Shown in pieces: positions 8,284 through 53,236 of a stretch of 64,000 bases of DNA. The translations under genes were made by a program, and so were the position numbers. The stretch comes from Haliotis rufescens (Eukaryota). The first letter of the stretch is position 1, and every line of letters starts with the position of its first letter. A model generated the notes under the pieces. That model was not told where the DNA came from. It ran no database searches and worked only from the letters and a program-made list of their open reading frames with translations. The stretch lies in the NCBI RefSeq assembly GCF_023055435.1, contig NW_025963780.1, positions 44,144,001 through 44,208,000 on the forward strand, read 5' to 3'.

Positions 8284-9903
8284 CAACTCGTCATAAATAT
8301 CGCACCACACATTTTAAAGTAAAAGTAGAAAAGATAATTTTCGGTTTTTTAAACTACAAGTACATATTTCATATACTACACCATCTGTGAACATAATATC
8401 ACAAACACACCCTGTTCCAAGCTGCACGTGCATGCTTGCGTTGAGCATGCTTGTACCGGGGGTCCGTTTGCTAAAAATGCAGTATGCACACAGCCTCTTT
8501 TGGCGTATGTTATGTTGGCAGACACAGCTAAAATTTGGTTTTAGGCATAAATTAAGCTTTATTTTGACCAACCAGTGAAGTGCCCAAGCGTCCAGTGCCT
8601 CTGAACCAAAGATGGCAAATTATTGGTGTGCACCAGACTGGTATGTCATGTCGTGCTATTGGAGCACAACTGAACATTCATCACACTGTCATCAGCTGGC
8701 TAATACGTAAGAATACTGCTTCCGGTGTAGTGAAGGATGCACCGAGGTCTTGACGTCCCAGAAAAACCAATGACAAGGAAGATCGTGCTCTCGTACGCCA
8801 AGCCAGACGAAGCCCAAAGTCTACTTGTACACAGCTGCGACATTGATGGCATCCATACAACAGAGTGTCCATCAGCACCATCAGACGACGCCTTAATTCT
8901 GCAGGATTAAGAGCAAGACGACCAATCAGACGTCCACTCCTCACAAATCAGCACCGCCATGCACATGCTCGCTGGAACCTGAGGACATGGAGAAGGATCC
9001 ACTGGTCCGATGAAAGCAGATTTTTGCTGCATCATACAGAAGGGAGGGCACGAGTTTGGAGGCAGAGAGACACAGCATATGATCAGAGGAACATTCAAGC
9101 TGATGTTCCATTTGGGGGTGGATCCGTCATGGTGTGGGGGTGTTGTTCCTATGATTGTTAACTTGACCTCATCACAGTTCCCGGAACACTGAATGGGTAG
9201 AGGTACCAGAACTTGATCCTGGACGGTGCTGTTGTGCCTCATTTCGATAATCACGCTCTCGCCACACGTCCAGTCTTTATGGACGATAATGCCAGACCAC
9301 ATCGTGCTCGAGCTGTTTTCAGCATCTCCAACACTACGCCATTGAGACACTACCCTGGCCTGCCAGAAGTCCAGACATTAATCCTATTGAGCAATTGTGG
9401 GACATTTTGAGACGTAGGGTGAGAGCAAGGGATCCTCCAGTTCATAACCTTCAGGAATTGACCCATGCATTGCATGATGAGTGGCAGCAGATCCCCCAAC
9501 AGAGATTCAGACGTCTGGTGACCAGTATATGACGGCGTGTCGAAATTGTTATCCAAGTGCGAGGCGGTTACACCAGATACTGAGTTAGCCAGTCATTGTG
9601 GACCTTACTAGTGTGTTTGACATTAATGAAATGTGAACTGTGTTGTGTGGCTGTTGTAACGACTTCGGCAGCCATACTTATTTCACCTTATTTCACGGTG
9701 ATTTCAGTGAACTTTGGTTTGCTACAATCAAACCCTCAATTAGTGCTCAAATTCGGTCTTGTGTTGTCAATTTTCTGACTGAACGCTCACATGAGGCCAT
9801 ATAAACAGTTTAATGTGCATTTTTAAGCACCATTTTTATGAGGTTGAAGATCCAGTTTTACTCAGTGAAAAAAAGTGGGTGGTGCGATATTTATGACGAG
9901 GTT
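8284..9903 (+). mobile_element. Tc1-family DNA transposon, near full length, decayed transposase
   Basis: TIRs caactcgtcataaatatcgcacca / tggtgcgatatttatgacgag flanked by TA; motifs WSDESRF, FMDDNARPH, SPDINPIE broken by stops and frameshifts. Confidence 0.92.
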
Positions 9904-14827: not shown

Positions 14828-15599
14828 ACGGTCAAACGGTGCCCGGAACTCTGTAAGTGATGGATACGTGCCTAACCCAATCTATGAAGGAACTGATGAC
14901 TACAAGCTGGAGCAATTGCACAGAAAGACTAGCAGTGACATTAAAGATGGCTATGAACCAGACACGGAGTCACCTTGTGGCTTCACGCGATCAGGACCAG
15001 AACGTTTAGGCCTCAGTCTTGACAAAACCTCCCTGGTGACGCAAGGACACCTTGACTATTTTGACGACATAGTTTTTAATACAGAGCCAACTGGGGGACA
15101 TTCAGAAGCGAAGAGCGATGGTAGAGTTTCAGATCTCTATGCCAAGGGGAACAAAGCACATCATGTGCATCTACACATGGGCGTATTGTCATGCATTTTT
15201 AAATTACACATGACAATGAATTAAAAAAATATGTTCTCACTGGATCTCCACAAATTGGGATGCTATTGTGCTTAAAAGCAAGGTTACAATCAACATAGGT
15301 AATTCTTTCACATCTATTATTTAATTGCTATTAAAGGTATGTTCTCCAAATATGTCGCACTTGTAAAACGTCTTATAGATTTTAGCTCAAGCTCGTATTT
15401 ATCCTTTTCTGTCCACGTGTGTTGTTCATTCTGCAGTAACAGATGTTTACTTATTAGTGCATATAGTTGTCTATTGCTTGTGTTTATTGATTTTTGAGTG
15501 AAACATTTTTGCGCATTTTCCCAAACTTTGCTATTTGTGAGCTATGTTCCATTAACTATGTTGTTCATACATATCCAAAGTGCGGGTGTAATTCTTTGT

Positions 15600-17815: not shown

Positions 17816-18969
17816 CACTCTTCAAAGAAAGAAATGCACAGGTAGATTTTGCGTAAATTTATTGTACCTAATAAAGTAGATAAATTTAATTTAATATCAT
17901 AGATACAAATATAATATTTGGGAGCTCGATAGTCGACTGCTGTCGTTTTTCAAATGCATTGAAAACTGTTCATTGTCATGTTACGTAAGTCCACAAGGTT
18001 GCACTGAACTCAGTATCTCATGTGACTGCCCCGGGCAGCAATCACGGCTCTGCATCTCATCGGCACTGACTGGATAAGTGTATGAAATCTGTCCTGCGGA
18101 ATTCTGCGCCATTCTGCTTGTAACGCGTTGGTCAGTTGTGGGAGTGTCTTCGGCGTGTTCATTTCGACGACGACAAACACGTTGTCTTCCATCTCGCCGG
18201 TGAAGAAGAAATCATTATTCGTTGCTAAACCACACTCGTCTCCAGTTTCTCGAATTCCAAGGCTGTAAGGTATGGGACCAACGCAAGCGTCGCTGTCGAT
18301 GGATCTGTTGGAAAACAGGGACGCTAACTGGTCACCAGGGTTGGTCTCCAGCCTCGCGAAGATGGTTCCTGACACTGGTCCTGACACTGAAGATGGTCCG
18401 ATATCCTCCTCAAATCAGGGATGCGTCCTGCAGTATTCGTAGCTGTTGCATTGCAGGGGTGGTAACTCTTGGTCGGCCGGTTCTCGGACTGTCTGCAGTG
18501 GAATTGAACGGTGTGTATCGGTCCCAAATGGTGAAAATGTTGCAGTGGTGGACGTTGAAGTGGCGTGCAACAGAAGACTGCGATTCCCTCTTTGAATACG
18601 TCCAATTGCGATGTTCCGATCGGCAGCGCTGGGTCTTGGCATTTTCGAACTTGAAAAATGTTGACAACTGAATGACAAATTATTGGCTTATGCTTGCCTT
18701 TCTATAGCCACTACCACGAGTTACGAATGCCAGAACTTGCACGTGCATTTTGCTTTACTGTTTTCCTCCATGACATTTTTTTAACAAGTGTGAAAACAAT
18801 ACCATTTGAGACATTAAATCGACAATGGCTGCGTTTTGACACACCGTGTGTCGAATATCAGGCCATCAACATTTTCCAACAACATATATCCAATTTATAT
18901 ACCGATGTTTTTGTGTAGTCAGGTTCAATGAACCACATACTACCTGTGCGTTTCTTTTTGTGAAGAGTA
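17816..18969 (-). mobile_element. Tc1-family element, internally deleted
   Basis: TIRs cactcttcaaagaaagaaatgcacaggtag / ctacctgtgcgtttctttttgtgaagagt in TA context; N-terminus MPRPSAADRNIAIG, motif PRTGRPRVTT, C-terminus RCRAVIAARGSHMRY. Confidence 0.88.
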
Positions 18970-32575: not shown

Positions 32576-32831
32576 GAAAGACTTTCTGTCATAAATCTGG
32601 AACAAAGACACTATATTTTCTACACCCTATATACATGTGTTCTCTACAAAGCAGAGCCAGTGTGTCATATGTTACTTGATTACAAAGTAAATAGTTGATA
32701 CCACTCTATAGTTGTGTATGACAGAACTGCATGATGACTAACGGTACTATCACACTCATTGTGTTTACTCCCCTATAGTCTCTGACACCGAGCTCTGAAT
32801 GAGTGTTTCTCCAGGCCTACACCAAAACAAC

Positions 32832-32886
32832 ATGTGGAGGAAGTGGCGGGGGTCCCTCTCTCTGCTGACATGGATTATACTTCAAG
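32832..32886 (+). CDS. Paralog C, signal-peptide exon (MWRKWRGSLSLLTWIILQ)
   Basis: ATG 32832, G|gtatct donor, 55 nt. Confidence 0.75.
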
Positions 32887-33916
32887 GTATCTTGTGATCA
32901 TTTTTATGAAAGTATCGTAGCATCGTTTGTGTATGAATTCAGTGTTATAAGAATGATATGTTTATGATAATATCAGTGTTACATGTACTGTAACAGTGAC
33001 ATCAATGTATATAATCATGGTTTAAACTCAGCGCTGTTTAGTTGAAGAAGTGCATATCACTGGTACATTGATCAGATTCGGACTCATTCATCCTATGTTA
33101 GATGACAGCCTCGTGTACATCTAATTGTATATTGAACTTGAAGATTGAACACTGAATTTTGAACATGTGAAGGTAAAATGTTGTTCATTATGTACCTATT
33201 GATAGAGATAATGAAGGCAGCCCAACACTTTATACGGATATTGAACACAAGCTTAACAACCGACTGAAATTTATTAAGGCTGGTCAGTTCCCATTTCTGG
33301 GATATGCAGTGATCTTTTGTAGAAAAAAGATGACATCTGAAGATTTTATGACGTAATGTAATAGTTCGCGAATTATAAGTTTGCAAATTGCATCTTCGCT
33401 GCATCTCGCCATGAAGACCCCCCTTGGTCGGGGATTCGAATCCAAAGAGCATATTCCTTGGTCTTTCCATTGCAACAACTGCAAAGTTAGTTTGTTCCGG
33501 CTCCAAATGAGCAGGCTCTGATGCAGTGTGTTACAAGGCACAGCCCATATCAACCGAGTGAGTGAATGTTACAGGCATCAATAACGAATTGCAAGTAACA
33601 TTTCTATCATAATGAATACATGATGCTACAGACATTATACGCAAATTGCAACGAAATTAATCATAGTCCAATGAAAAACTACCAGGTTTGCGTTTTGATT
33701 ACATGGGATAAACATAGCTTACTTAGAAGTAACGATATATGGTTTCACAAACCTTGTTATCAGTGTTTATGTGAAATGTCATAAGGTTTAGTGCGTTGAT
33801 GAGGTACTGATGTGCAAACGTTATTTGGCTATCTAGATATATTGTTGTAGGTAACAATTCATTTCCGTAAATACCAGTTTATACAATTTAAATCAGTTTA
33901 TATTAACAATGTACAG

Positions 33917-34300
33917 CTATCTCTGGCCTGAGACACAAGACTGCCTGTTACAACTTCCCGTTGATAGTCGATCCTCCGTGTGCCTCTACAGAGATGCTTC
34001 TTCCTACCATGTTTACACTCGGGGTGTCCTCTGACGTCACATGTCACAGTGAAATAAGTGGAGAAAGCTTAAGATACAAGGGAGTAGATGAAATCAGACG
34101 TTGCTGTCAACAGCGTGAGAATGATACCGTGAGAGATTACTGCCTCCCTGCTATGAAGAACCAACTCCCGGGACACTACTTCCCCGACTTTGTGAGCACG
34201 TGCACGGCCTCTACAAAATGTCAGTTGTCAACTTCTGAAAGTCGGTTGCTCAATACTGATGGTGCAGACTATGTAACATTCACGTTTGAATGTGTGCACA
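33917..34300 (+). CDS. Paralog C, Cys-rich domain 1
   Basis: Ancestral acceptor missing; in-frame gtacag| 12 nt downstream is usable; A|gtgagt donor. Confidence 0.8.
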
Positions 34301-35408: not shown

Positions 35409-35759
35409 AGGACACGGTGCTGCATATCCAACGTAATTCTACACAAACAGGACAGGAGGTGTACCTGTACAACGACCAACATGACGGGTTGGCACGTGCT
35501 TACTGTCTAGCATACTCTCACGAGTGTAACTCCCATGTCATAATACAACTTGCTGCAACCCGAGTTGTGTCTGCCGCCTGCATTGTGGACTTCACTGATG
35601 GGGATGTGTCAACCAAGGTGGACTGTAAAAATACATCTGCATCAAGAAACTGTTCCAGCGCAATGTTTGAGAGCAAGCTCAACTATGTTAACATGTCAAT
35701 ATTCATGACAGTCGATCCTGGAGGTAAAGAAAAAGAATTTCTTTGGTTGCGGGCGAAAG
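35409..35759 (+). CDS. Paralog C, domain 2 (CUB-like, tentative)
   Basis: ttttcag| ... G|gtaagt; 351 nt. Confidence 0.85.
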
Positions 35760-37700
35760 GTAAGTGATTAATAATTATATCTGCCCTGATGTGTTGGTAA
35801 ACCTGGAAATGGGACTAAAGGTCTTGCGGAAAAAGTTCCTTGATGGCAATCTGACGTCGGCTCTGACGTCGTGCCTTTTTACATTGTTATCATAATGTAT
35901 GTGTTAAACTAGGCTTAAGGATAAACACAATGACTATTAGGATATGTTGTTTGAGATCTTTATTCATGTATCAAGGAGCAAAACCTACCTGTAACTTTCA
36001 CTCAAATCAAATTGCTTAAGGGCAAGTATCGATATGATTAAGAATAGCATTATAATCATAAAAATTGCTACCTTTTGTACAGACACACCTCCCTCTGACC
36101 ATTCAGTGTTTCAGTGAATAAATACACGCAGTCTACACGTGTGACACGGTCTCAGAGTGAACGTTACTGTGCAACTGCTGCTGTATGTACCTGGCATATC
36201 GTCAACATGGCCTCACTCGTCACAAAGATATTGACACTGAACATATTAATCATAAACCGGTCCGCCGAAATGTAAAAAAATGAATACAAAAGACTTAGTG
36301 CTTTCATCTTTTCCCCAATGTTTCCTGCCGATTTTTATGCTTTGGTTGATTCCTTTGGTTAATTGTCAGATAATTGTATCATTGCAAAAATATTTATTTT
36401 CAATAAATGTTTGCGCAAAGACATAATGGGAAAAGGAAGTTTTACATATTTATTCACTGCTGCATCTCCCTCTCACTCCCTGGTGCCTTTACATAGAGTG
36501 AGAGGGGGATGTTTCATGTAAAAACACGTCAAACTTCTTTGTTCAGCACCGGAACACACGGTATGTTTATCTCCGCCCTACAGAGTGAACGCGAATATGT
36601 TTGTGATAGCAGTATGGATACCAATGTGTTGTGTAGGCTGAACGGGGGCACGGGTGAGCAGTGCTGAGTCCCTTTGGGCACGCCAAAACCTATGACTGTG
36701 GGTTCGAATCCCGGTTCGCCCCGATTTTGTTTCTAGGTTTGTCAGCACCATACCCGTGCTCGTGGGTTTCACCAAAGTGGTAAACGTCTGAGACCCTCGG
36801 GCTTTCCTCCCACATTAAGCTGACACGCCGTGATATAACTGGAACTCTGTTAAAGCGGCGTTTCACTCAACTCACTCACTCACTCACTGTGTAGGCTAAA
36901 TGTTCCAATGGATCAGTGACAGTCCGCAGTCGTCTCCGCATATATATTCAAGGTTTAATTCTCAGTAAAATAGTTCAATCCCTCCTATGAGAGGTAATAG
37001 AACCAGGAAGAAGCCTACCGGGAATACCAAGTAAACATTATTCTACCACCTCCGAGAGCAGTGAATCGATCCTTGCAGTTGGGAGTGCTGAAGTACACGC
37101 CACTATTTTGACGTCATAATGTTCCAGAGACAGGAAGTAAAAGCATCTCAGCGCAGGAAGTTTACAGCAACACAAAATGATGTCAATGTTTCCAACTTTT
37201 CAGTCGTTTGTCGTTTCGTCCCCTTTAAAAAACTAAGGATCCGCGGTATTACACAATGTTTCGTGTTTTTGCATGAAATATTCTACCATTAGGGCTGTAG
37301 ATGTCGAAAGAAGTCATATTAGGTAGATGTTTCGGTGATGCGGTTGTCAACATGATGATGGTCGAGCGAATACTAGTACATAATGTCATGGCAGAACACA
37401 CAAACAAGTGCACATGGTGAATGCACATGCACATGTATTATTCATTTGTCTGCAGTATCAATAACCTCTTTCATATTTACCTACCACATCGGTAATAACC
37501 TACCGCGCATGTAGTGTTTAACAAAATAATATAAGGCGTGGTAGCCAGTACATAATTTGAAATTAATAAAAGTACATAAACTGACGCTGGTGGCGATACT
37601 CCGTGTGTTAGTGTAAACACTGTCTGTCTGATTTATTTCGTGAATTGGTGTGGATGTGCACGAGTATATGTGGTATTATTCAATAATCATTTTGTTGCAG

Positions 37701-38096
37701 CGGATACAGGTGAAAATGTTACCGTCGTCTGTGGAGCCAACATTCCTGCAGATGTGTCACTGAACTGCCCAACGTCTGCATCAACAACTACGACATCAAC
37801 TACTTCAACTACAACTACTGCTGCTGCCACTGCCACTGCCACTGCTACTACACAAACAGTAACGTCCAATAATGCCTCCAGCAACCACGCACAGGTAGCG
37901 GTGACATCATCACCTGGTAAGCCACAAGCACAACTAATAACAACGTCAGCAGGGACAACGATGCACAGCAATGCCTCTACCACGCTATCGTTGTCCAGTG
38001 TGAACGGCTTTTCCTCCAACATCACTCCCCGCCATCCCGATCCAAACTCTCCCACAACACTCCCTCAGCAGAGTGGAGTCACAGAAACGACGTCAG
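37701..38096 (+). CDS. Paralog C, mucin stalk exon
   Basis: gttgcag| ... G|gtacac; 396 nt; an internal in-frame alternative donor CCT G|gtaagc exists near 37916. Confidence 0.75.
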
Positions 38097-38366
38097 GTAC
38101 ACGCAGTATATAAACTTAGAACCTTTCTCTCTTTTCACGAGGTTCGCTCACGGTTTCGCTTACACCTGGTGTCATAACTTTTTGATAGTGATTCATAAAC
38201 ACATGCTTGTGCTATAGTTGGAATCGTACAATGGACGCTGATTTAAGCAAATGTTTCTTCTGATCAAGGTGGTGGGTGAGTTTGGTTTAACGCCTCTTTT
38301 AACAGTATTACAGTTATATCGCGGCGTGTCAGCTTAATGTGGGAGGAAAGCCCGAAGTTTACCACT

Positions 38367-38579: not shown

Positions 38580-41151
38580 ATTGAAGATACAATTAATAAT
38601 ACTAACACTAATACTCCCAGATTCAAGGTGAGGCAATCTGAACAACCACTGCATCGAGTTTATGTGCAGTGTGTTGAGAGGATCAGCAACCCTGTGGATG
38701 AAATCGGCTGGCCCGAAAAGTGAAACAGATGGCTTTCTGTTTGCTTCTCAGGGTCAGTTACCGCCAATTCGAAAGTGATTTTGCATCAAAATGCCCATCC
38801 ATGGTACGGCCCATAATATGTAGAGGGCGTCATGGAAAATGATAAATACAAAATTATTTTGAATAGGCCCATATACAGCCTCAGACCTATCCAGGCCAAC
38901 AAACCTGATCTTGTTCTTTTTGATAAATCCAGTGAAATTACTTATGTAATTGAATTATCTGTCCTTTTTGACACTAATGTGTTTGACACTATTAAGGAGA
39001 AACATGGCAGATATGCGGACTTTCATACAAAGGACATTTAACAATTAATAAGGGTAAACTGTACATAACATAATTTAGATTAATTGTACCTACTATTGCA
39101 ATTATTATGTTGCGAATATACAAGTCATACACAAATACACAGATACAGATATTGGTATATGACCAAACCGGTGCATCCATGCACATGTATGTATACACAT
39201 ATATGCATGTACAGCTGTACCTCTACATATCATCATGTCACGCATACAAACAACAATTTGATTTACGTAATCGTAAATAAGACACATATCTAAATTTTAA
39301 ATCTTTTAGATTTTGTAATGTACAAATGAACAGATTCTACAAGAAGATGTTATAGCATTTCCATATAATACTGTCATAAAAGTCATATCCTTTCTTATAG
39401 TAGTACATATTGTTCCGAAATTTGCAGTATTTGCGACATGAAAAGAGGTAATGAGTTGGATCCTCATAATGGTATCCACGGCAGCAGGTAGTAGACGCGT
39501 ATGTCTATGATATCTGTGTTCAGTTAAATCTGAGGCGGGAATAGATACTTTGACAGAAACGGGTACCATAGTCTTAATTTAAGCCAAATATTAAAGGATT
39601 TTCTGTTGTGGTGATACATTTAGTGAAGTCATTTACAGTATATTTTAACTGAACATTATCCGGTTATTCATTCCACATTCGCACTGTGTCGGGTAAAAAT
39701 GATTTGTGGTAGTTAACTGTTCTAGCATTTACAGTCTGTAGCTGTGAAGAAGTTCTTAAATTGAAACGTGCGCCCGCTGAGACATTAGGAGGAACAATCT
39801 AGGAACACGGTTACATAGATATTCAGGGGCCAACTTGTTAACCATTTTGTAAAATGTTTTTAATGTATGAGATTGCCGTCTTTTGGATAAGGTGTAAGGT
39901 TAGTTTTAGAATATAGAGACTCGTGACTGGTACCACGAGTAGCTCCACATATTGTTCTCAGTGCGTCGAAACACAAGCCTTTCCAATACCAGTTATCCCA
40001 TACCTGGTCACAATAGTCGAATATTGGTAAAATGAATTATCGGTATATATTCTATGACGTTTTTCTGGACAGGCGGCATTTGAAATTTCTAAAGCAGTTA
40101 ATCAATCATAGGGCTTACTTTATCTACTACATTATCTATGTGATTTGACCAGTAGCCAAACTTGCTGTCAAATTAGATTAGTGTTTGTACGATGAGACCT
40201 TTTGTATTGGAACACCTTTCGTTTTACGAACAGGTTTTTGGCTTGTTTTTTTTTTTCTTGAAAACATGATGGTTTCAGTGAATTAAACGAAATGTCTTTC
40301 GAAATGTCATGCTTGCTTCCCAAGTTCCAACTTGTCGTACTTCCCATTCTTCACGGTGCCTAAGACCTAGTACCTTTCAATCTGTTGACTGACATTGGGA
40401 GAATATTTTGAAGTGTATACTTGCTTTTATGTACGAATCACGTGTGGACAATATATGTAAACACTTGGCAGTTCATAGCACTCCTGCTTGGTTTTGTGTG
40501 GCATTGTATCCCAATGTGGCCATGTTGACACTTCATTGACTTTTTTTTATCTGCCTCTAGTAGTTACAAGTTCCAATTTGCTACCTATTGCTGAAACCAT
40601 GTTACATATCGTCATTCACTTATTTTAATACCTCGGGGGAGACCCGTGAAGATCCGTGGTAGAACAAGTCTTTAGAAACAACCCATGCTTGCCATAAAAG
40701 GCGACTTTGCTTGTCGTAAGAGGCGACTAACGGGATCGGGTGGTCAGACTCGCTGACATGGTTGATGCATGTCAAAGTATCCCAATTACGTGGATCGATG
40801 CTCATGATGTCAATCACTGGATTGTCTGGTCGAGACTCAATTATTTACAGACCGCCGTCATATAGCTGGATTATTGCTGAGTGCGGCGTTAAACAAACAA
40901 ACAAAACCGCGTGGAAATCCGGGTGAGAAAGGTTTCATGGCACCCAGTTGGTTGTTGTATGAGGCCACCAGATGAGATCAGCAGGTGCGACTTGGCTGGT
41001 TTCATGTCATGCTGCACCCATGACTTTGATCGGTGCTCATGTTTTCCTTCACGTGTTTGTCAGGTCAAGATTTGATTATATCTCGCCTGAATATAGCTGA
41101 CTGCAGTGATACACACCCACTCTAAAGATATGATATGTATCGTGTTGCCAG

Positions 41152-41226
41152 AGGCCACTCCACCAATGGATAATGACACATCGACTCCAGCTGCAACAGA
41201 AACTCTTCCTTCAACACCAAGCAAAG
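41152..41226 (+). CDS. Paralog C, short stalk exon (EATPPMDNDTSTPAATETLPSTPSK)
   Basis: gttgccag| ... G|gtactc; 75 nt. Confidence 0.7.
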
Positions 41227-42285: not shown

Positions 42286-42373
42286 AGGTGGTTATAATCG
42301 GCTGCAGTGTGGGAGGAGTCATCATGATAGCAATCATTGTGACAATCACGGTCTGCGTCCGACGAAAGAAAAG
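42286..42373 (+). CDS. Paralog C, transmembrane exon (EVVIIGCSVGGVIMIAIIVTITVCVRRKK)
   Basis: gttaacag| ... AG|gtaaaa; 88 nt. Confidence 0.8.
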
Positions 42374-43136
42374 GTAAAAGCTTTTACAATTAGTATTACC
42401 ATATCGGGGAATAACATACCCACACATTCTCTGAAAGAACATTCACTCTACATGGAATTAGTCATGCATGAATCGCTGTGTTCTTAAATATACATCGCAA
42501 TTCAAGAGTATGTTTGTAATTGATCTTTCATCTATCGTTGATAAAATCATCATGCATGGTTACTGAGATTATGCATATCAGTGAAACACTTCTCATATCC
42601 TATACTTCCGTTAAAAACATGATATAAAATGAGTTCAGGACGAGAGTTTGTGGGTGTCAACTTCGGTATTATGAGGAACACAACATTAAGGAGTATTTGC
42701 TTACTCCTTCATCCGGTGATATGAATTTACTTCCTCCTCCTACCTGAGAAAGCCTATACTCCTAAATGTGTTCCTCATAATAAAGTAGTTGACATCCATA
42801 AATTCTCTTCCTCACTTCCTCATGTGTATCACTTCAAAATGCCATTCAAAGACTTGACATATTACGTTGATATCGAATCTGTCTTAGTTGTGCTTCTCAT
42901 TTTCGATGTAAAATTGTCCTTGAGGCACTGAACACATCTTCTTCGGTCTTACTGACGATCATGGTGCAATAATGGTATATTAATCGGTATGAAGTTAAAT
43001 AATATATCAATCGGTTCCAAGAAGTATTCCAAAATTAAGCCAATGCATACGAGCTTATACAACAAGCAAAGCAATATATTTATTTCATATATAAAGCCTT
43101 CATTATACCTACTGAATTAATATTATCTTGAAACAG

Positions 43137-43680
43137 TTCAGAGAATACTAATCCAAAACGTTTACTCATGGAGGAAAACCACGAGGATCGGAACGAGCCA
43201 AACGGTACCCGGAACTCTGTAAGTGATGGAAACGTGCCTAACCCAATCTATGAAGGAACTGATGACTACAAGCTGGGGCAATTGGACAGGAAGACTAGCG
43301 ATGACGTTAAAGATGGCTACGAACCCGAACTGGAGTCACCTTACGCGTATGGCTTCACGCGATCACGGCCAGCACCTTCAGGCCTCAGTCTGGGCAAAAA
43401 CTTCTGGGTGACACAAGGACACCTTGAGTATTATAACGACACAGTTGTCAATACAGAGGCAAGTGGGGGACATTCAGAGGAGAAAAGGGATGATAGAGTT
43501 TCAGATCTCTATGCCAAGGTGAACAAAGCACGGGGCACTGATCAGGTGACGGATGTGTATACTCAAGTAGACAAACCAAGGAAGCCTGCTCGTGGAACAT
43601 CCGGGCAGTACTCTGCTGGAGAGAACCCAGGGCAGGATGAGGACATTGATGCCATGTACGCAAAGGTTCAGAAGAAGTGA
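43137..43680 (+). CDS. Paralog C, cytoplasmic tail with NPIY, LYAKVNK, VYTQVDK, MYAKVQK
   Basis: aaacag| phase-2 acceptor in frame with ORF 43168-43680; summed exons 1893 nt = 630 aa + stop. Confidence 0.85.
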
Positions 43681-45699: not shown

Positions 45700-46700
45700 A
45701 ATTAAGTTATCACTCTTGTTATACAGTATTGTGGAGATTGTTTTGTCACTCTGAATCTTCATGCATAGATCTAAATATGAAACGGATGAGTCGGTCTCAC
45801 TGGTCTCCTATATTTCTAGTTCAGGTGGGTAAATCAGTGGAAGGGAATTGGCTATTTAATTGCTATTGAACGATAGCAGATCATCGACATACCTGAAGCT
45901 TAAGCTAAACTTCTTGGCCCAATTACCTCGTTTTGACTTTGCCAATCCGAATAGAAATTCTTATTCATATGGATAAAGAAACAGATCCACAAGAAGGGGA
46001 GCACAATTGGCGCCTATGGGGATCCCTACTGCTTCCCTAAATGTCCTACCCCCCAACTTTACGTAGGTGTTATCAATGAGGATGTCCAGCATTTCACATA
46101 CTGTTTTCTCAGTAAACTTCAGATGGTATTTGCTTTCATTTTTCACAAATTCTCCTGAACCTCTGAATATAGATATGTAACTGTGTCTGTGTACACCACG
46201 TTTTGTAACAAAAAACCCATGAAGTTTTTCGTTAAGTTTGTCATGTGGGATAGTAAGTTTTTGAATTTCTTCCTCAGGCCTTATATGTGGCATTATTTGA
46301 TATATCATTTATACCCAGTTCTTTGATCATACAATTTATGTAGTGATGCTTACATATGATGGTTATGTTATTTGATGCCTTGTCAGTGGGAACAACTACA
46401 GACTTTTCATGTTGGGCAGCCAGACTTAGGATAACAGCTGGCTGGGACAGAATGGTTTTATTTCTATTCCGTTTCCTCTTTTTAAGTTTGTGGGTTCTAA
46501 AACTGACAACAGCACGCACTGACTTAAAAACACGAACGAATGCAATAACCTTTCAGCGATTTCTTTGGATAACACTGTGTTCGATTCACTTTAACGTTCA
46601 AGGAAGAGAACTAAATGTAAGTGTCAGATCTGTATTTTTATCACAGTCAGTAGACTGTCGTTCGGTGTTCAACGAAGTATTAACAATTATTTTGTAAGTT
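45700..46700 (-). mobile_element. Penelope-like reverse transcriptase relic (paralogous to 15600-16800)
   Basis: VVVPTDKASNN and GIPIGANCAPLLVDLFLYPYE. Confidence 0.8.
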
Positions 46701-49700: not shown

Positions 49701-50135
49701 AATACTGAATTGATCTGTATGCCAAATGTTACGATATAGCCAGGGACGTGTTCTGATGTATGAATAATATGATGACACAGCCTAGAGGTCAGTTGATAGT
49801 GCGATGGGAAAGACGCCCTGTAACAATGAATACAAAAATTAATATACAAACATAACTCCGCAACGGCTGTGTTCATGCACAAAATGCACCAAAAACCTAA
49901 ACAGTAGTTTTAAATAACAATCTACTACACCTATAGGATATTCATGGTATGATATTCTACAATCATAAGCTTAAGGTGATATACTAGTACTTAGATATAA
50001 CATTCACACACATAAAAAATAAATAGAACAATAACATAACTATAATATATCAAAGTCGTACGTTTAGGTTGCACAATATATATATTTGGTGAAACCCACT
50101 AGGGTGCATCGTAGAGGTAGAGTGGATAACTGCCC

Positions 50136-50608
50136 ACGATATACCTGTCCATGATATACCTGTCCGTGATATACCTGTCCATGATATACCTGTCCATGAT
50201 ATACCTGTCCATGATATACCTGTCCGTGATATACCTGCCCACGATATACCTGCCTACGATATACCTGTCCATGATATACCTGTCCATGATATACCTGTCC
50301 GTGATATACCTGTCCATGATATACCTGTCCGTGATATACCTGTCCATGATATACCTGCCCACGATATACCTGCCCACGATATACCTGCCCACGATATACC
50401 TGTCCATGATATACCTGTCCATGATATACCTGTCCATGATATACCTGTCCGTGATATACCTGTCCATGATATACCTGCCCACGATATACCTGTCCGTGAT
50501 ATACCTGCCCACGATATACCTGTCCATGATATACCTGTCCATGATATACCTGTCCATGATATACCTGCCCACCATATACCTGCCTACGATATACCTGTCC
50601 ATGATATA
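50136..50608. repeat. 15-bp minisatellite (ATGATATACCTGTCC and variants), ~31 copies
   Basis: Direct tandem repetition; source of the spurious MDRYI/MIYLS ORFs. Confidence 0.95.
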
Positions 50609-52256
50609 CAACACATAAACACGTTCCTATTTACAGACATATGTAAATTACATCTCGATTATCTTTAAATCATGAGTACACTACACAAGTTACTGAATAC
50701 ACACATTATTCCACCTCGACCAAAACACAAATAAAATGAAATATATCTAGTAAACATCCACTATCTACACACAAACACAAGTATATGTAGTATGCTAAAA
50801 TGGTATTAATGAGATTTAGACATTTAGGTATGGAATGGAATAAAAATACATAGAACACAATAATAACGTTAAATGCGAACATTCCAATTACATTAAACCC
50901 ATCCCAGTGCCAAGTGAAGTGTGAGAGGGGTGCAGTGGGGAGGATAAATGAGGTAAAATGAGGACACACAACAACAAAACAAAAGACCATGAGTTTACTG
51001 ATAGTGCTTAGCTGACGACTACTTAAGCAGCAGCCTGAAATGAAAAGTACAATTGTATGTCAATCAATGAGGAGAGTTACTTGATAAATCTGAAATAAAT
51101 ACAATAAATATGTGTTAGTAAATGCATTATCTGAAATATCCAGAATTTGTTGATTAACATACCAAACCAAATAGCTTATTCACAATTCATGATCAATATA
51201 CACAGAAACTATACCATACTACAACTACAATATATTATTTCACGTAAACAAGGCATGGTGAGTGCGAATAATCAATATAATCTACAGAAATAGTGGTAGT
51301 ATTGCAAATGGATATTCCTGTGTTATGTAATACGACATTGGTAATACTGCTCTATCATATTTGTACCACCTAAAGCTCAACTTTGGCGAAGGAACATCGG
51401 TAACATATTTGTGATCACTTCGATTGACACATAACGTTATAAATTTAAAGGAAAATGCCCAGAATGCATGATATCTTTTAATGCGACATTGACAACTCCT
51501 CAACAATCGTGTCAACTCAACTGTTGGAGTCCCGCGTATCTAACTTCACTGATGTTCTACTGTCAGCTCGACACTATGGTCAGACTTGAGCTTAGTGGAA
51601 TTGATCAGAGATATGGCCCAGTAACTGAACTTCTAGGCAGTTGTGTATTGTCGGGTATCATTTGAAGATGATGAGCATCTTTGGCTGGTTGGTTGGTTTG
51701 TTGTTTGACGCCGCACTCAGCAATATTCCAGCTATATGACGGCGGTCTGTAAATAATCGAGTCTGGACCAGACAATCCAGTGATTGATATCATGAGCATC
51801 GATACACGCAATTTGGATCGATGACATGTATCAACCAAGTCAGCGAGCCTGACCACCCGATCCCGTTAGTCGCCTTTTACGACAAGCATAGTCACCTTTT
51901 ACGGCATGGGTTGCCGAAGACCTATTCTACCCCGGAATCTTCACGGGGCGTGAGCATCTTTGAAGCAAATACCCAACTATAACGTGATGGTTGAGGGATG
52001 AGGTACACAAACTTTCTAGGAGTGATAACGAAGCGAAAAGAAGCATATTATTAAACAGAATCACTTGTGTTAGATTTGTTCATGTAAACCTGAAGTCAAT
52101 GTTAATGTCAATCGATCAGTTGGTGATAACGAAAGCACAATATTATCTCCATCACTTTGTGCGATTTGAGCATGTATTATTATTGTTATTGTTATCTCCT
52201 GAGATACTGAAGGATCCCACACAAGGGACATCACCTAAGGGAGCCAGTATTAAATA

Positions 52257-52675
52257 TTACATTAGCTTCACATCAAACTTCAAACTTTGAATATCTTTCC
52301 TTGGAGTTTCTTCTGTTGAAGAAAGAGTTTCTTGTGTTGAAAGAAAAGTTTCTTCTGTTGAAGGAAGAGTTTCTTGTGTTGAAAGAAAAGTTTCTTGTGT
52401 TGAAAGAAGAGTTTTTGTTGTTGAAAGAAGAGTTTCTTGTGTTGAAAGAAGAGTTTCTGTTGTTGAAAGAAGAGTTTCTGTTGTTGAAGGAAGAATTTCT
52501 TGTGTTGAAGGAAGAGTTTCTGTTGTTGAAAGAAGAGTTTCTTGTGTTGAAAGAAGAGTTTCTGTTGTTGAAAGAAGAGTTTCTGTTGTTGAAGGAAGAG
52601 TTTCTTCTGTTGAAGGAAGAGTTTCTGTTGTTGCAGCTGGAGTTGATATGTCATTATCCATTGGTGAAGTGGCCT
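52257..52675 (-). CDS. Paralog D, terminal exon with expanded 7-aa mucin repeat ([TEQ]ETL[LP]ST)n
   Basis: gttgtcag|EATSPMDND...; 21-bp coding minisatellite; the donor of A (G|gtattc) reads G|atattc, so the frame runs on to KDIQSLKFDVKLM*. Confidence 0.65.
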
Positions 52676-53236
52676 CTGACAACACGTTACATATAATGTC
52701 TTGAGAGTATTCAGATAGCGTTAAAAACAAGTGGGTGTGCAACTATTGATTCTCACTGCAGTAGGCGATATTCAGGAGAGATAAAGTCAATTCTGACCTC
52801 ACAAACATGTGACAGAAAACATGAACACCCATCGCAGTCCTCGGTGCACGATTACAAGCAATCAGCCCAAGCCGCACCTGCTGATCACATTTAGTCGCCT
52901 CGTACAACAACCAACCGGGTGCCGTGGAACTTGTCTGACCCGGATTCCCACGAGGTATCAAAACAAGTGAATGTGGGTATATGACATGGTTTAAGCAATA
53001 GGTAGGGAATTGTGAATTCTTACTTGAGGCAGATTAAGAAAGACAATGAGGTGTCAACATGGTAACTATGTGCACATGGGGAAACAAACACTAAAACTTG
53101 CAAAGGATTGTGTGTGGTACGGCATTAAAAGAAAAAAATTCTAAAGTTGTTTTAGCATGTGATGTTTTTTATTAACTCTGTTACTATGGTTGTCCTTGCT
53201 GGCGTTACTGTTGCAGTTGCTGTGCTCGTGGCTTAC

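Follow-up and report, generated by a model that had tools for sequence, protein, structure and literature searches.

Three Csk-type tyrosine motifs in the predicted cytoplasmic tail of a Haliotis membrane glycoprotein

We analysed a 64,000-nt stretch of Haliotis rufescens DNA (RefSeq assembly GCF_023055435.1, contig NW_025963780.1, forward-strand positions 44,144,001 to 44,208,000; hereafter the window, whose first letter is position 1) and concentrated on the exon at 43137..43680. This exon belongs to LOC124120898, referred to here as paralog C, an uncharacterized gene that is already annotated in RefSeq but unstudied. The product of the exon is predicted to be the cytoplasmic tail of a single-pass type-I membrane glycoprotein found in Haliotis, and it contains three copies of a Y-[A/T]-[K/Q]-V-x-K motif whose tyrosines are very probably functional. 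Because the tail has no enzyme domain, it probably acts through short linear motifs, and we judge it probable that these motifs serve as phosphotyrosine docks. The whole scheme, in which a motif-driven signalling tail would be phosphorylated, dock Csk and inhibit signalling, is a plausible reading that we put forward tentatively.

Results

Three copies of one tyrosine motif lie near the end of the tail

The original prediction, made from the letters of this DNA without database searches, named six tyrosine-containing strings in the tail, and all six are present when the coordinates are read from the sequence (window positions on the plus strand, as for every exon and motif of this gene). NPIY (43240-43251) is followed by DDYKL (43261-43275) and YYND (43429-43440), and the three related motifs lie downstream, namely DLYAKVNK (motif 1, 43504-43527), DVYTQVDK (motif 2, 43552-43575) and AMYAKVQKK (motif 3, 43651-43677), the last at the extreme C-terminus. 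The Csk SH2 docking pattern pY-[A/S/T]-x-[V/I/M] occurs three times in the tail, and in seven intact tails of the family all 21 of 21 motif instances are predicted sites of this type. The tail was rightly described as about 180 residues without a catalytic domain, as it has 181 residues and no Pfam family at E<=1. The description of it as low-complexity does not hold in the strict sense: the tail is polar (77% polar residues) and acidic (net charge -9), with 19 residue types and 3.99 bits.

The motif counts were compared with those in 200,000 composition-preserving shuffles of the tail. The results show that Y[AT][KQ]V.K, observed three times, has a shuffle mean of 0.0008, and three copies were reached in 0 of 200,000 shuffles, indicating that the motifs are real and not due to chance. 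Three copies of the broader pattern Y[AST][KRQN][MIVR] give P=6e-5, and NP.Y gives P=0.046, while the generic pattern Y..[LIVMF] is not over-represented (P=0.21).

The last result bears on the main rival explanation, in which the motifs are trafficking signals: unphosphorylated YxxV would bind AP-2 mu2, NPIY would bind Dab2, Numb, ARH or GULP, and the protein would be an endocytic or phagocytic receptor of the scavenger or lectin type. Each of the three motifs matches Y..[LMVIF], and NPIY, which has V at -5, conforms to the pattern.[^P].NP.[FY] of phosphotyrosine-binding (PTB) domain or sorting motifs and is invariant in the four species compared; a mucin stalk and a possibly lectin-like ectodomain, itself a weak lead, would also suit an uptake receptor. 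However, the lack of over-representation of the generic pattern speaks against sorting signals, as does the position of the motifs, 125-180 residues from the membrane and thus beyond the established distance of classical YxxPhi signals. In addition, conservation extends past Y and +3 to positions -2, +1, +2 and +5, which argues for a reader more selective than mu2. We regard trafficking as an unlikely reading of the motifs that still deserves serious weight, and it is not mutually exclusive with phosphotyrosine docking. The string V-P-N-P-I-Y is found 38 residues from the start of the tail exon and about 43 past the transmembrane (TM) helix, and has the hydrophobic-x-N-P-x-Y form for which PTB binding is predicted.

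We compared the tail with the known classes of tyrosine signalling motif. As the original prediction had stated, the three motifs are not canonical tyrosine-based inhibitory motifs of immunoreceptors (ITIMs): the regular expression [S/I/V/L]-x-Y-x-x-[I/V/L] finds no match, the -2 residues being D, D and A, and D, D and A/S/T in the other species. The SLAM-type immunoreceptor tyrosine-based switch motif (ITSM, T-x-Y-x-x-[V/I]) is also without a match, motif 2 having its T at -3 (VTDVY). Neither the tyrosine-based activation motif of immunoreceptors (ITAM, Yxx[LI]-x6-12-Yxx[LI]) nor the hemITAM (DEDG-YxxL) is found, and DDYKL has L at +2 and not at +3. The EPIYA core of CagA is missing, the cores here being SDLYA, TDVYT and DAMYA, and only the Y-A/T-K/Q-V-x-K half is common with CagA segments A and B. 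A di-lysine signal for endoplasmic reticulum retrieval was likewise rejected, as the C-terminal lysines are at -1, -2 and -5 and not at -3/-4 or -3/-5. Since the tail failed the tests for ITIM, ITSM, ITAM, EPIYA and PAG membership, it should be assigned to none of these classes.

The motif tyrosines are conserved in four Haliotis species

The original prediction depended on conservation of the tyrosines in homologues, and this holds in the four Haliotis species. The tails are about 41-77% identical across the four species, and those of H. asinina and H. rubra are about 50% identical to that of H. rufescens. Six of the 11 tyrosines are invariant, namely those of NPIY, DDY and L[DE]Y and the three motif tyrosines. 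In YYND it is the first Y that is conserved (L[DE]Y), and YxN is present in some copies only. SDLYAKVNK of motif 1 is invariant in the four species; in motif 2 the Y, V, D and K are invariant, with T/A/S at +1 and Q/K at +2 across copies; and [AT][MLA]YAK[VI]QK stands at the C-terminus in all four. The motif columns (-2 to +5) are invariant at 18 of 24 positions, compared with 46 of 157 elsewhere in the tail (Fisher P=3.7e-5). In the seven intact tails, 21 of 21 motif instances are Y-[A/T/S]-[K/Q/N]-[V/I], and all of them fall within Y[AST][KRQN][VI]. Only three variants fall outside this set: the copy with internal stops (L005/L007) has YFKV, the truncated paralog A (L006) has YAKG, and a divergent H. 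asinina protein, P0003, has YAEA.

These data also bear on the explanation that the motifs have no specific function and arose by internal duplication of a short segment, kept alike by recent gene duplication or gene conversion. The recent paralogues are indeed young, with synonymous divergence (dS) of 0.05-0.35 and nonsynonymous-to-synonymous ratios (dN/dS) of 0.3-1.1, and the third of the tail that bears the motifs has the lower dS, consistent with gene conversion. However, the motifs are kept between species in which the rest of the tail is about 50% identical, and out-of-set substitutions occur only in otherwise broken copies. We disfavour this explanation and consider it very unlikely.

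The motif-bearing exon is joined to a transmembrane exon

RefSeq isoforms X1 (XP_048247138.1; P0005, 641 residues) and X2 (P0006, 581 residues) map with 100% identity onto seven window exons, and these database proteins are the joined protein used here. Exon 1 (32799..32885) carries the start codon and signal peptide (P0005/P0006 residues 1-29, 100% identity), and exon 2 (33916..34300) encodes the cysteine-rich ectodomain 1 (P0005 residues 30-157), which is without a Pfam match and for which a SUEL-lectin-like fold is a weak lead only. Exon 3 (35409..35758) encodes ectodomain 2 (P0005 residues 159-274), which is beta-rich and better conserved than any other part of the family. The Ser/Thr-rich mucin-like stalk comes from exon 4 (37700..38096), which has its donor GT at 38097 and leaves one codon base (phase 1), and isoform X2 uses an internal donor in this exon, after 37916. 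The small stalk exon 5 (41151..41225; EATPPMDNDTSTPAATETLPSTPSK) supplies P0005 residues 407-431. Exon 6 (42286..42375; EVVIIGCSVGGVIMIAIIVTITVCVRRKK) encodes the TM helix with an RRKK stop-transfer and is flanked by an acceptor AG at 42284-5 and a donor GT at 42376. Exon 7 (43137..43680) is the terminal coding exon and encodes the entire 181-residue cytoplasmic tail and the stop codon.

The original prediction rested on the tail exon being spliced to the TM exon, and the RefSeq models agree, as P0005 and P0006 map at 100% and lead in frame from 42286-42375 into the tail. The acceptor AG of exon 7 is at 43135-6, its frame runs from 43138 to the stop codon TGA at 43678-80, and its first base completes a split serine codon (AG|T). 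Checked by hand, the splice phases are consistent: a single base of the split codon closes exon 4 and the other two open the TM exon, whose own last two bases are completed by the first base of the tail exon. The junction in the RefSeq protein reads ...TITVCVRRKK-SSENTNP..., in frame. The splice between exons 6 and 7 is based on the RefSeq model and reading-frame logic, with indirect support from the two RefSeq isoforms and from the presence of 65-78% of exon and 3' untranslated region words in eight small-assembly runs (guessed to be RNA, with the same organism label). Taken together, exon 7 is almost certainly a real, spliced tail exon.

The acceptor of this exon differs from that of the paralogues. 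In the paralogues it reads ...TTTTCTAG|AAACAG, while paralog C (window 43125-43137) has TTG replacing the ancestral TAG. The RefSeq model of paralog C uses the CAG 6 nt downstream as the acceptor, by which RRKK-RNSSE becomes RRKK-SSE, with Arg-Asn lost and the frame kept.

Several further features were observed in and around the gene. The small stalk exon of paralog C (EATPPMDNDTSTPAATETLPSTPSK, 41151-41225) corresponds to the start of an open reading frame (ORF) of 21-bp repeats in the inverted paralog D, where the exon appears expanded (52257-52742, minus strand; EATSPMDNDISTPAATTETLPSTEETLPST...). The introns and spacers contain two pieces of Tc1/mariner-like transposase ORF and one reverse-transcriptase-like piece (…IPIGANCAPLLVDLFLYPYE), together with a 15-bp-unit minisatellite (MDRYI/VGRYI). 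The transposon debris lies at window positions 8865-9161 (plus strand), 18010-18387 (minus strand), 45961-46308 (minus strand) and 50099-50618.

The predicted protein is Haliotis-restricted and its ectodomain gives weak fold leads

In the predicted protein, a signal peptide is followed by two ectodomains that contain cysteines, then by a mucin stalk, a TM helix and a polar tail, with about 430 ectodomain residues. Pfam searches of all four large exons returned nothing at E<=1 apart from a chance zf-UBP_var match, and a profile search of PDB sequences returned only generic similarity to TM helices (sodium-channel beta-2 and APP). The ectodomain is neither Ig nor C-type lectin by any search run (Pfam or PDB profile). 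In the ESM Atlas it gave SUEL-lectin, CUB and CRF-BP leads scoring 0.76-0.80 (SUEL_Lectin clusters 0.80), which is below the reliable range and within noise. An AlphaFold2 prediction of the full protein with a 21-sequence family alignment had a mean predicted local distance difference test (pLDDT) score of 28.5, and the model is unusable.

A HMMER search with the tail against 1.84 billion cluster representatives returned three proteins, all from Haliotis, and a word-index search with the best of these returned 23 proteins, again all from Haliotis (H. rufescens, H. cracherodii, H. rubra and H. asinina). The word-index protein search with the tail alone gave no match, this search being length-limited. 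On these searches, the family appears restricted to Haliotis. One of its members, the H. asinina protein P0003 (XP_067649173.1, 1437 residues), is a giant paralogue in which the stalk module is repeated five or six times.

The gene lies in an array of paired short-tail and long-tail genes

Ectodomain 2 is present in 13 copies of 83-100% identity at C2:44.022-44.199 Mb, the thirteenth being inverted. The cluster (G000:C2:44.022-44.199 Mb) is a six-fold repeat of a unit that consists of a short-tail gene and a long-tail gene, with a period of 28-31 kb, and window positions 1-55900 are its 3' part. Six short tails (...RCFYQRQTRKNGADVYNTTS..HTYSTV..TYANTSYEYHNQ), with the motifs YNTT, YSTV, YANT and YEYHNQ, lie 2.2-2.4 kb after the odd-numbered ectodomain copies. 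The even-numbered copies are followed, at 4.8-9.1 kb, by six long tails, which are all the long-tail copies of the genome and sit in this one cluster on contig C2. Four long tails appear intact; of the other two, the one at C2:44070407-44070920 contains internal stops and that of paralog A (window 14832-15224) is cut short. Both tail types are also found in H. cracherodii, H. rubra and H. asinina. No ITAM and no charged TM residue were found in the short-tail protein. With its tandem genes, near-identical ectodomains and two distinct TM/tail types, the cluster has paired-receptor anatomy, in which opposing outputs of the two tails are a candidate possibility. Such a six-fold array offers a tidy natural system in which to ask whether paired receptors arose independently outside vertebrates.

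The pairing matters for another explanation, in which the long tail is a positive scaffold whose motifs and NPIY recruit activating adaptors (Shc or Dok through PTB domains, PI3K, Crk or SAP-like proteins), with the long-tail genes as the activating partners. The B motif of CagA (YTQV/YAQV) binds PI3K and Crk, SLAM TIpYAQVQK binds SAP, and V-x-N-P-x-Y fits the generally known preference of Shc-type PTB domains, all of which would suit this role. Against it, the tail has no YxxM, no YxxP and no T at -2, and the short-tail partners carry YxN-type motifs (YANT, YHNQ) that make them the more natural activating arm. We hold this explanation to be quite improbable.

Candidate readers are encoded in the abalone genome

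At least 39 matches to SH2-coding exons were found in the genome. The Csk SH2 exon (G000:C1:61700977-61701195, L008) matches human CSK over its whole 73 residues, at about 70% identity by eye (E=5.5e-33), and its next matches are SYK and SHP2 at about 1e-17. An SHP2 orthologue is represented by tandem SH2 exons at C212:3143085 and 3147413, which match PTPN11 at E of about 1e-32. Because both Csk and SHP2 are present, the presence of a reader does not discriminate between them. A second, more divergent Csk-like SH2 exon (WYHGRMTREEAERLL...HYHGDYTLSV...; G000:C1:61697081-61697302, L009) was also observed on the strand of the Csk SH2 exon, 3.9 kb upstream of it. It might reflect duplication of the exon or of the gene, or belong to a tandem-SH2 relative of Csk.

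The motifs might be phosphotyrosine docks for a phosphatase of the SHP2/Corkscrew type or for SHIP, which would make the tail an unconventional ITIM-like inhibitory tail. They fit the loose SHP2 N-SH2 pattern Y[IVTA].[VILP], SHP1 and SHP2 are among the binding partners of the CagA A segment (IYAKVNK), the tandem SHP2 exons are at hand in the genome (C212:3.143-3.147 Mb), and the spacing of 16 residues between motifs 1 and 2 could suit a tandem-SH2 reader. However, the hydrophobic residue or Ser at -2 that defines an ITIM is absent from all three motifs in all species (D, D and A/S/T), and the high-affinity SHP2 sites of CagA are its C and D segments, not A and B. The lack of a hydrophobic residue at -2 makes SHP2 the less favoured candidate, and we consider this explanation improbable.

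Similar motifs recur in other abalone tails

A genome-wide search for DNA encoding D-x-Y-A-K-V-x-K found 25 instances, compared with 5 for the backward control and 9 for the reversed peptide. Of these 25, 17 are in tail-like contexts, near the C-terminus of membrane-protein tails or in terminal mini-exons. Three copies are in the paralog C cluster on C2, five are at G000:C157:7.11-7.24 Mb (L049-L053), where a terminal mini-exon reads DVYAKVNK...ED[ILM]YAKPNK, and three are at G000:C90:1.49-1.85 Mb (L042-L044). On C445, within L056-L059, the locus at 43.69 Mb reads ...DDLYAKVNKTKPMS and then stops, the locus at 43.90 Mb has two copies in a YED[VIM] array that ends with GD[VI]YAKVKK and a stop, and the locus at 47.08 Mb has a TM helix followed by DMYALVNK and DIYAKVDK; C556 and C594 have one instance each. 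Non-homologous abalone tails or terminal mini-exons carry D-[LVI]-Y-A-K-V-[NKD]-K close to the C-terminus. BLASTP of the paralog C tail against these recurrent loci showed similarity at the motifs only, and in a genome-wide tblastn search with the tail none of the recurrent loci outside the C2 cluster was matched.

These results raise the idea, which we regard as doubtful, that abalones use [D]-hydrophobic-Y-A-K-V-x-K as a general receptor-embedded motif for Csk recruitment, placed at the C-termini of several unrelated, lineage-specific receptor families, the six-fold array of pairs among them. If true, it would be an invertebrate way for Csk to reach the membrane without a Cbp/PAG homologue, through the same peptide that Helicobacter pylori CagA mimics.

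At the distant relatives of the ectodomain at C445:27.9-28.1 Mb, a crude scan for tails matched only satellite repeats. The satellite arrays lie downstream of these relatives at G000:C445:28.139-28.142 Mb (L065 and L068) and C445:27.953-27.960 Mb (L063 and L066), and have units of about 165 bp and about 870 bp, as estimated from how far apart recurring ORFs lie in that scan. Their spurious ORFs mimic tyrosine motifs (YTNVVK, NPTY).

Discussion

We propose that the three [D/A]-hydrophobic-Y-[A/T/S]-[K/Q/N]-[V/I]-x-K repeats are most likely sites of tyrosine phosphorylation by a Src-type kinase, as they fit the YxxV/L/I substrates of the Src family with acidic residues upstream, a hydrophobic residue at -1, a small residue at +1 and V at +3. 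Once phosphorylated, the motifs would dock an SH2 protein, for which Csk appears to be the best-fitting reader. Songyang et al. reportedly found in 1994 that, in peptide libraries, the SH2 domain of Csk prefers pY-[T/A/S]-[K/R/Q/N]-[M/I/V/R], a pattern that all 21 motif instances in the intact tails fit. Docked Csk would then sit beside active Src-family kinases at the membrane and switch them off, and the membrane-proximal NPIY may add a PTB adaptor such as Dok, Shc, Numb, Dab or GULP. Judged from motif sequence and conservation, Csk is possible rather than probable as the reader, and an inhibitory outcome would follow from phosphorylation and Csk docking together. The original prediction, of an inhibitory receptor that would dampen Src-family signalling through Csk or SHP2, is partly supported.

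A number of points weigh against this scheme. The YxxV pattern is also one for AP-2 sorting, and NPxY can act in endocytosis. The excess of D.YAKV.K in the genome reduces to about eight independent loci, and the DNA pattern for the hexapeptide YAKVNK is not enriched genome-wide (32 instances versus 26 in the control). The divergent H. asinina protein P0003 is the only one to have lost NPIY; DDY, motif 1 (YAEA) and motif 3 are gone from it as well, and of the set only VIYAKVDKK is left. The dN/dS values give no useful signal for the motif-bearing third, because it has too few substitutions. The searches gave no recognized fold for the ectodomain, so that the protein is a putative ligand-binding receptor and the word "receptor" is to be read in that sense. 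CagA segments A and B bind SHP1/2, PI3K and Crk as well as Csk (PMC4412286; PMC13457649), and therefore the motif does not single out one reader. SLAM SLTIpYAQVQK, a close look-alike of the motifs, is a SAP site that requires T at -2 (PMC2271153).

Csk has no membrane anchor of its own, and in vertebrates Cbp/PAG and a few other phosphoproteins bring it to active Src kinases (PMC3492796). If the scheme is true, a genus-specific surface protein with a conserved Csk-type site in triplicate would be a concrete candidate for a Csk anchor in molluscs, and it would give an invertebrate a way to inhibitory signalling that does not use ITIMs. We know of no equivalent Csk anchor in molluscs. Work on molluscs to date has centred on ITIM receptors such as the oyster NCAM1-SHIP2 axis. 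If the motifs are sorting signals, the tail would be that of an ordinary endocytic receptor.

Comparison with known systems

The look-alikes cited in the original prediction proved to be real. Human Cbp/PAG ISAMpYSSVNK binds the Csk SH2 domain with a dissociation constant of 0.5-1 uM (PMC5071372), and the Csk site of Cbp is YSSV, Csk itself being a single conserved gene in all animal phyla (PMC3492796). Cbp/PAG1 and the abalone protein are both single-pass proteins with a long, enzyme-free, tyrosine-rich tail, and ISAMpYSSVNK is mirrored by the C-termini ISAMYAKVQK of H. asinina and IDAMYAKVQKK of H. rufescens. The proposed logic, in which a Src-phosphorylated site brings Csk to the membrane, would be shared by analogy with Cbp/PAG, with Csk anchors of the VE-cadherin type and with CagA EPIYA-A/B. 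However, PAG has a 16-residue ectodomain, a CSSC palmitoylation site and YEEI-type sites for Src SH2 domains, whereas in the abalone protein the ectodomain runs to about 430 residues, the TM helix is not followed by a di-cysteine (the juxtamembrane sequence TVCVRRKK has a single Cys), YEEI is absent and there are three Csk-type sites versus one. A PAG homologue was rejected, as no PAG was among the HMMER matches to the 1.84 billion cluster representatives, which returned only Haliotis, and the tail has no Y[EDT][EDN][IVLM].

The CagA peptides are STEPIYAKVNK (EPIYA-A), PEEPIYTQVAK (EPIYT-B) and PEEPIYAQVAK (EPIYA-B) (PMC4412286), and of the CagA segments, A and B are bound by Csk whereas C and D are not (PMC4412286; PMC13457649). 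YAKVNK of motif 1 is identical to EPIYA-A, and motif 2 has YTQV-x-K as in EPIYT-B. The two differ in that E at -3 and P at -2 are absent from the abalone motifs, and in that the abalone protein is a host membrane protein whereas CagA is an injected effector. The resemblance to CagA thus appears to be convergent at the level of the motif.

VE-cadherin (LY685AQV) is listed among the membrane anchors of Csk (PMC3492796). Like the abalone protein it is a cell-surface protein that bears a YA[QK]V site, although the ectodomains are unrelated. CD200R uses an NPxY (Dok) without an ITIM, and the abalone tail likewise combines NPxY with the lack of an ITIM. The abalone tail, known here from its sequence, differs from both in combining three repeated sites and NPIY in one tail. 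It departs from the ITIM and ITSM receptors in that its -2 residues fail both definitions, its short-tail partner has no charged TM residue or ITAM, and its ectodomain is not of the Ig or C-type lectin kind. The C-terminal Yxx[VI]xK of the abalone tail nevertheless resembles the membrane-distal motifs found in a number of inhibitory receptors, and the gene array resembles those of KIR, LILR, SIRP and Siglec, being a tandem cluster in which near-identical ectodomains are joined to two different tails.

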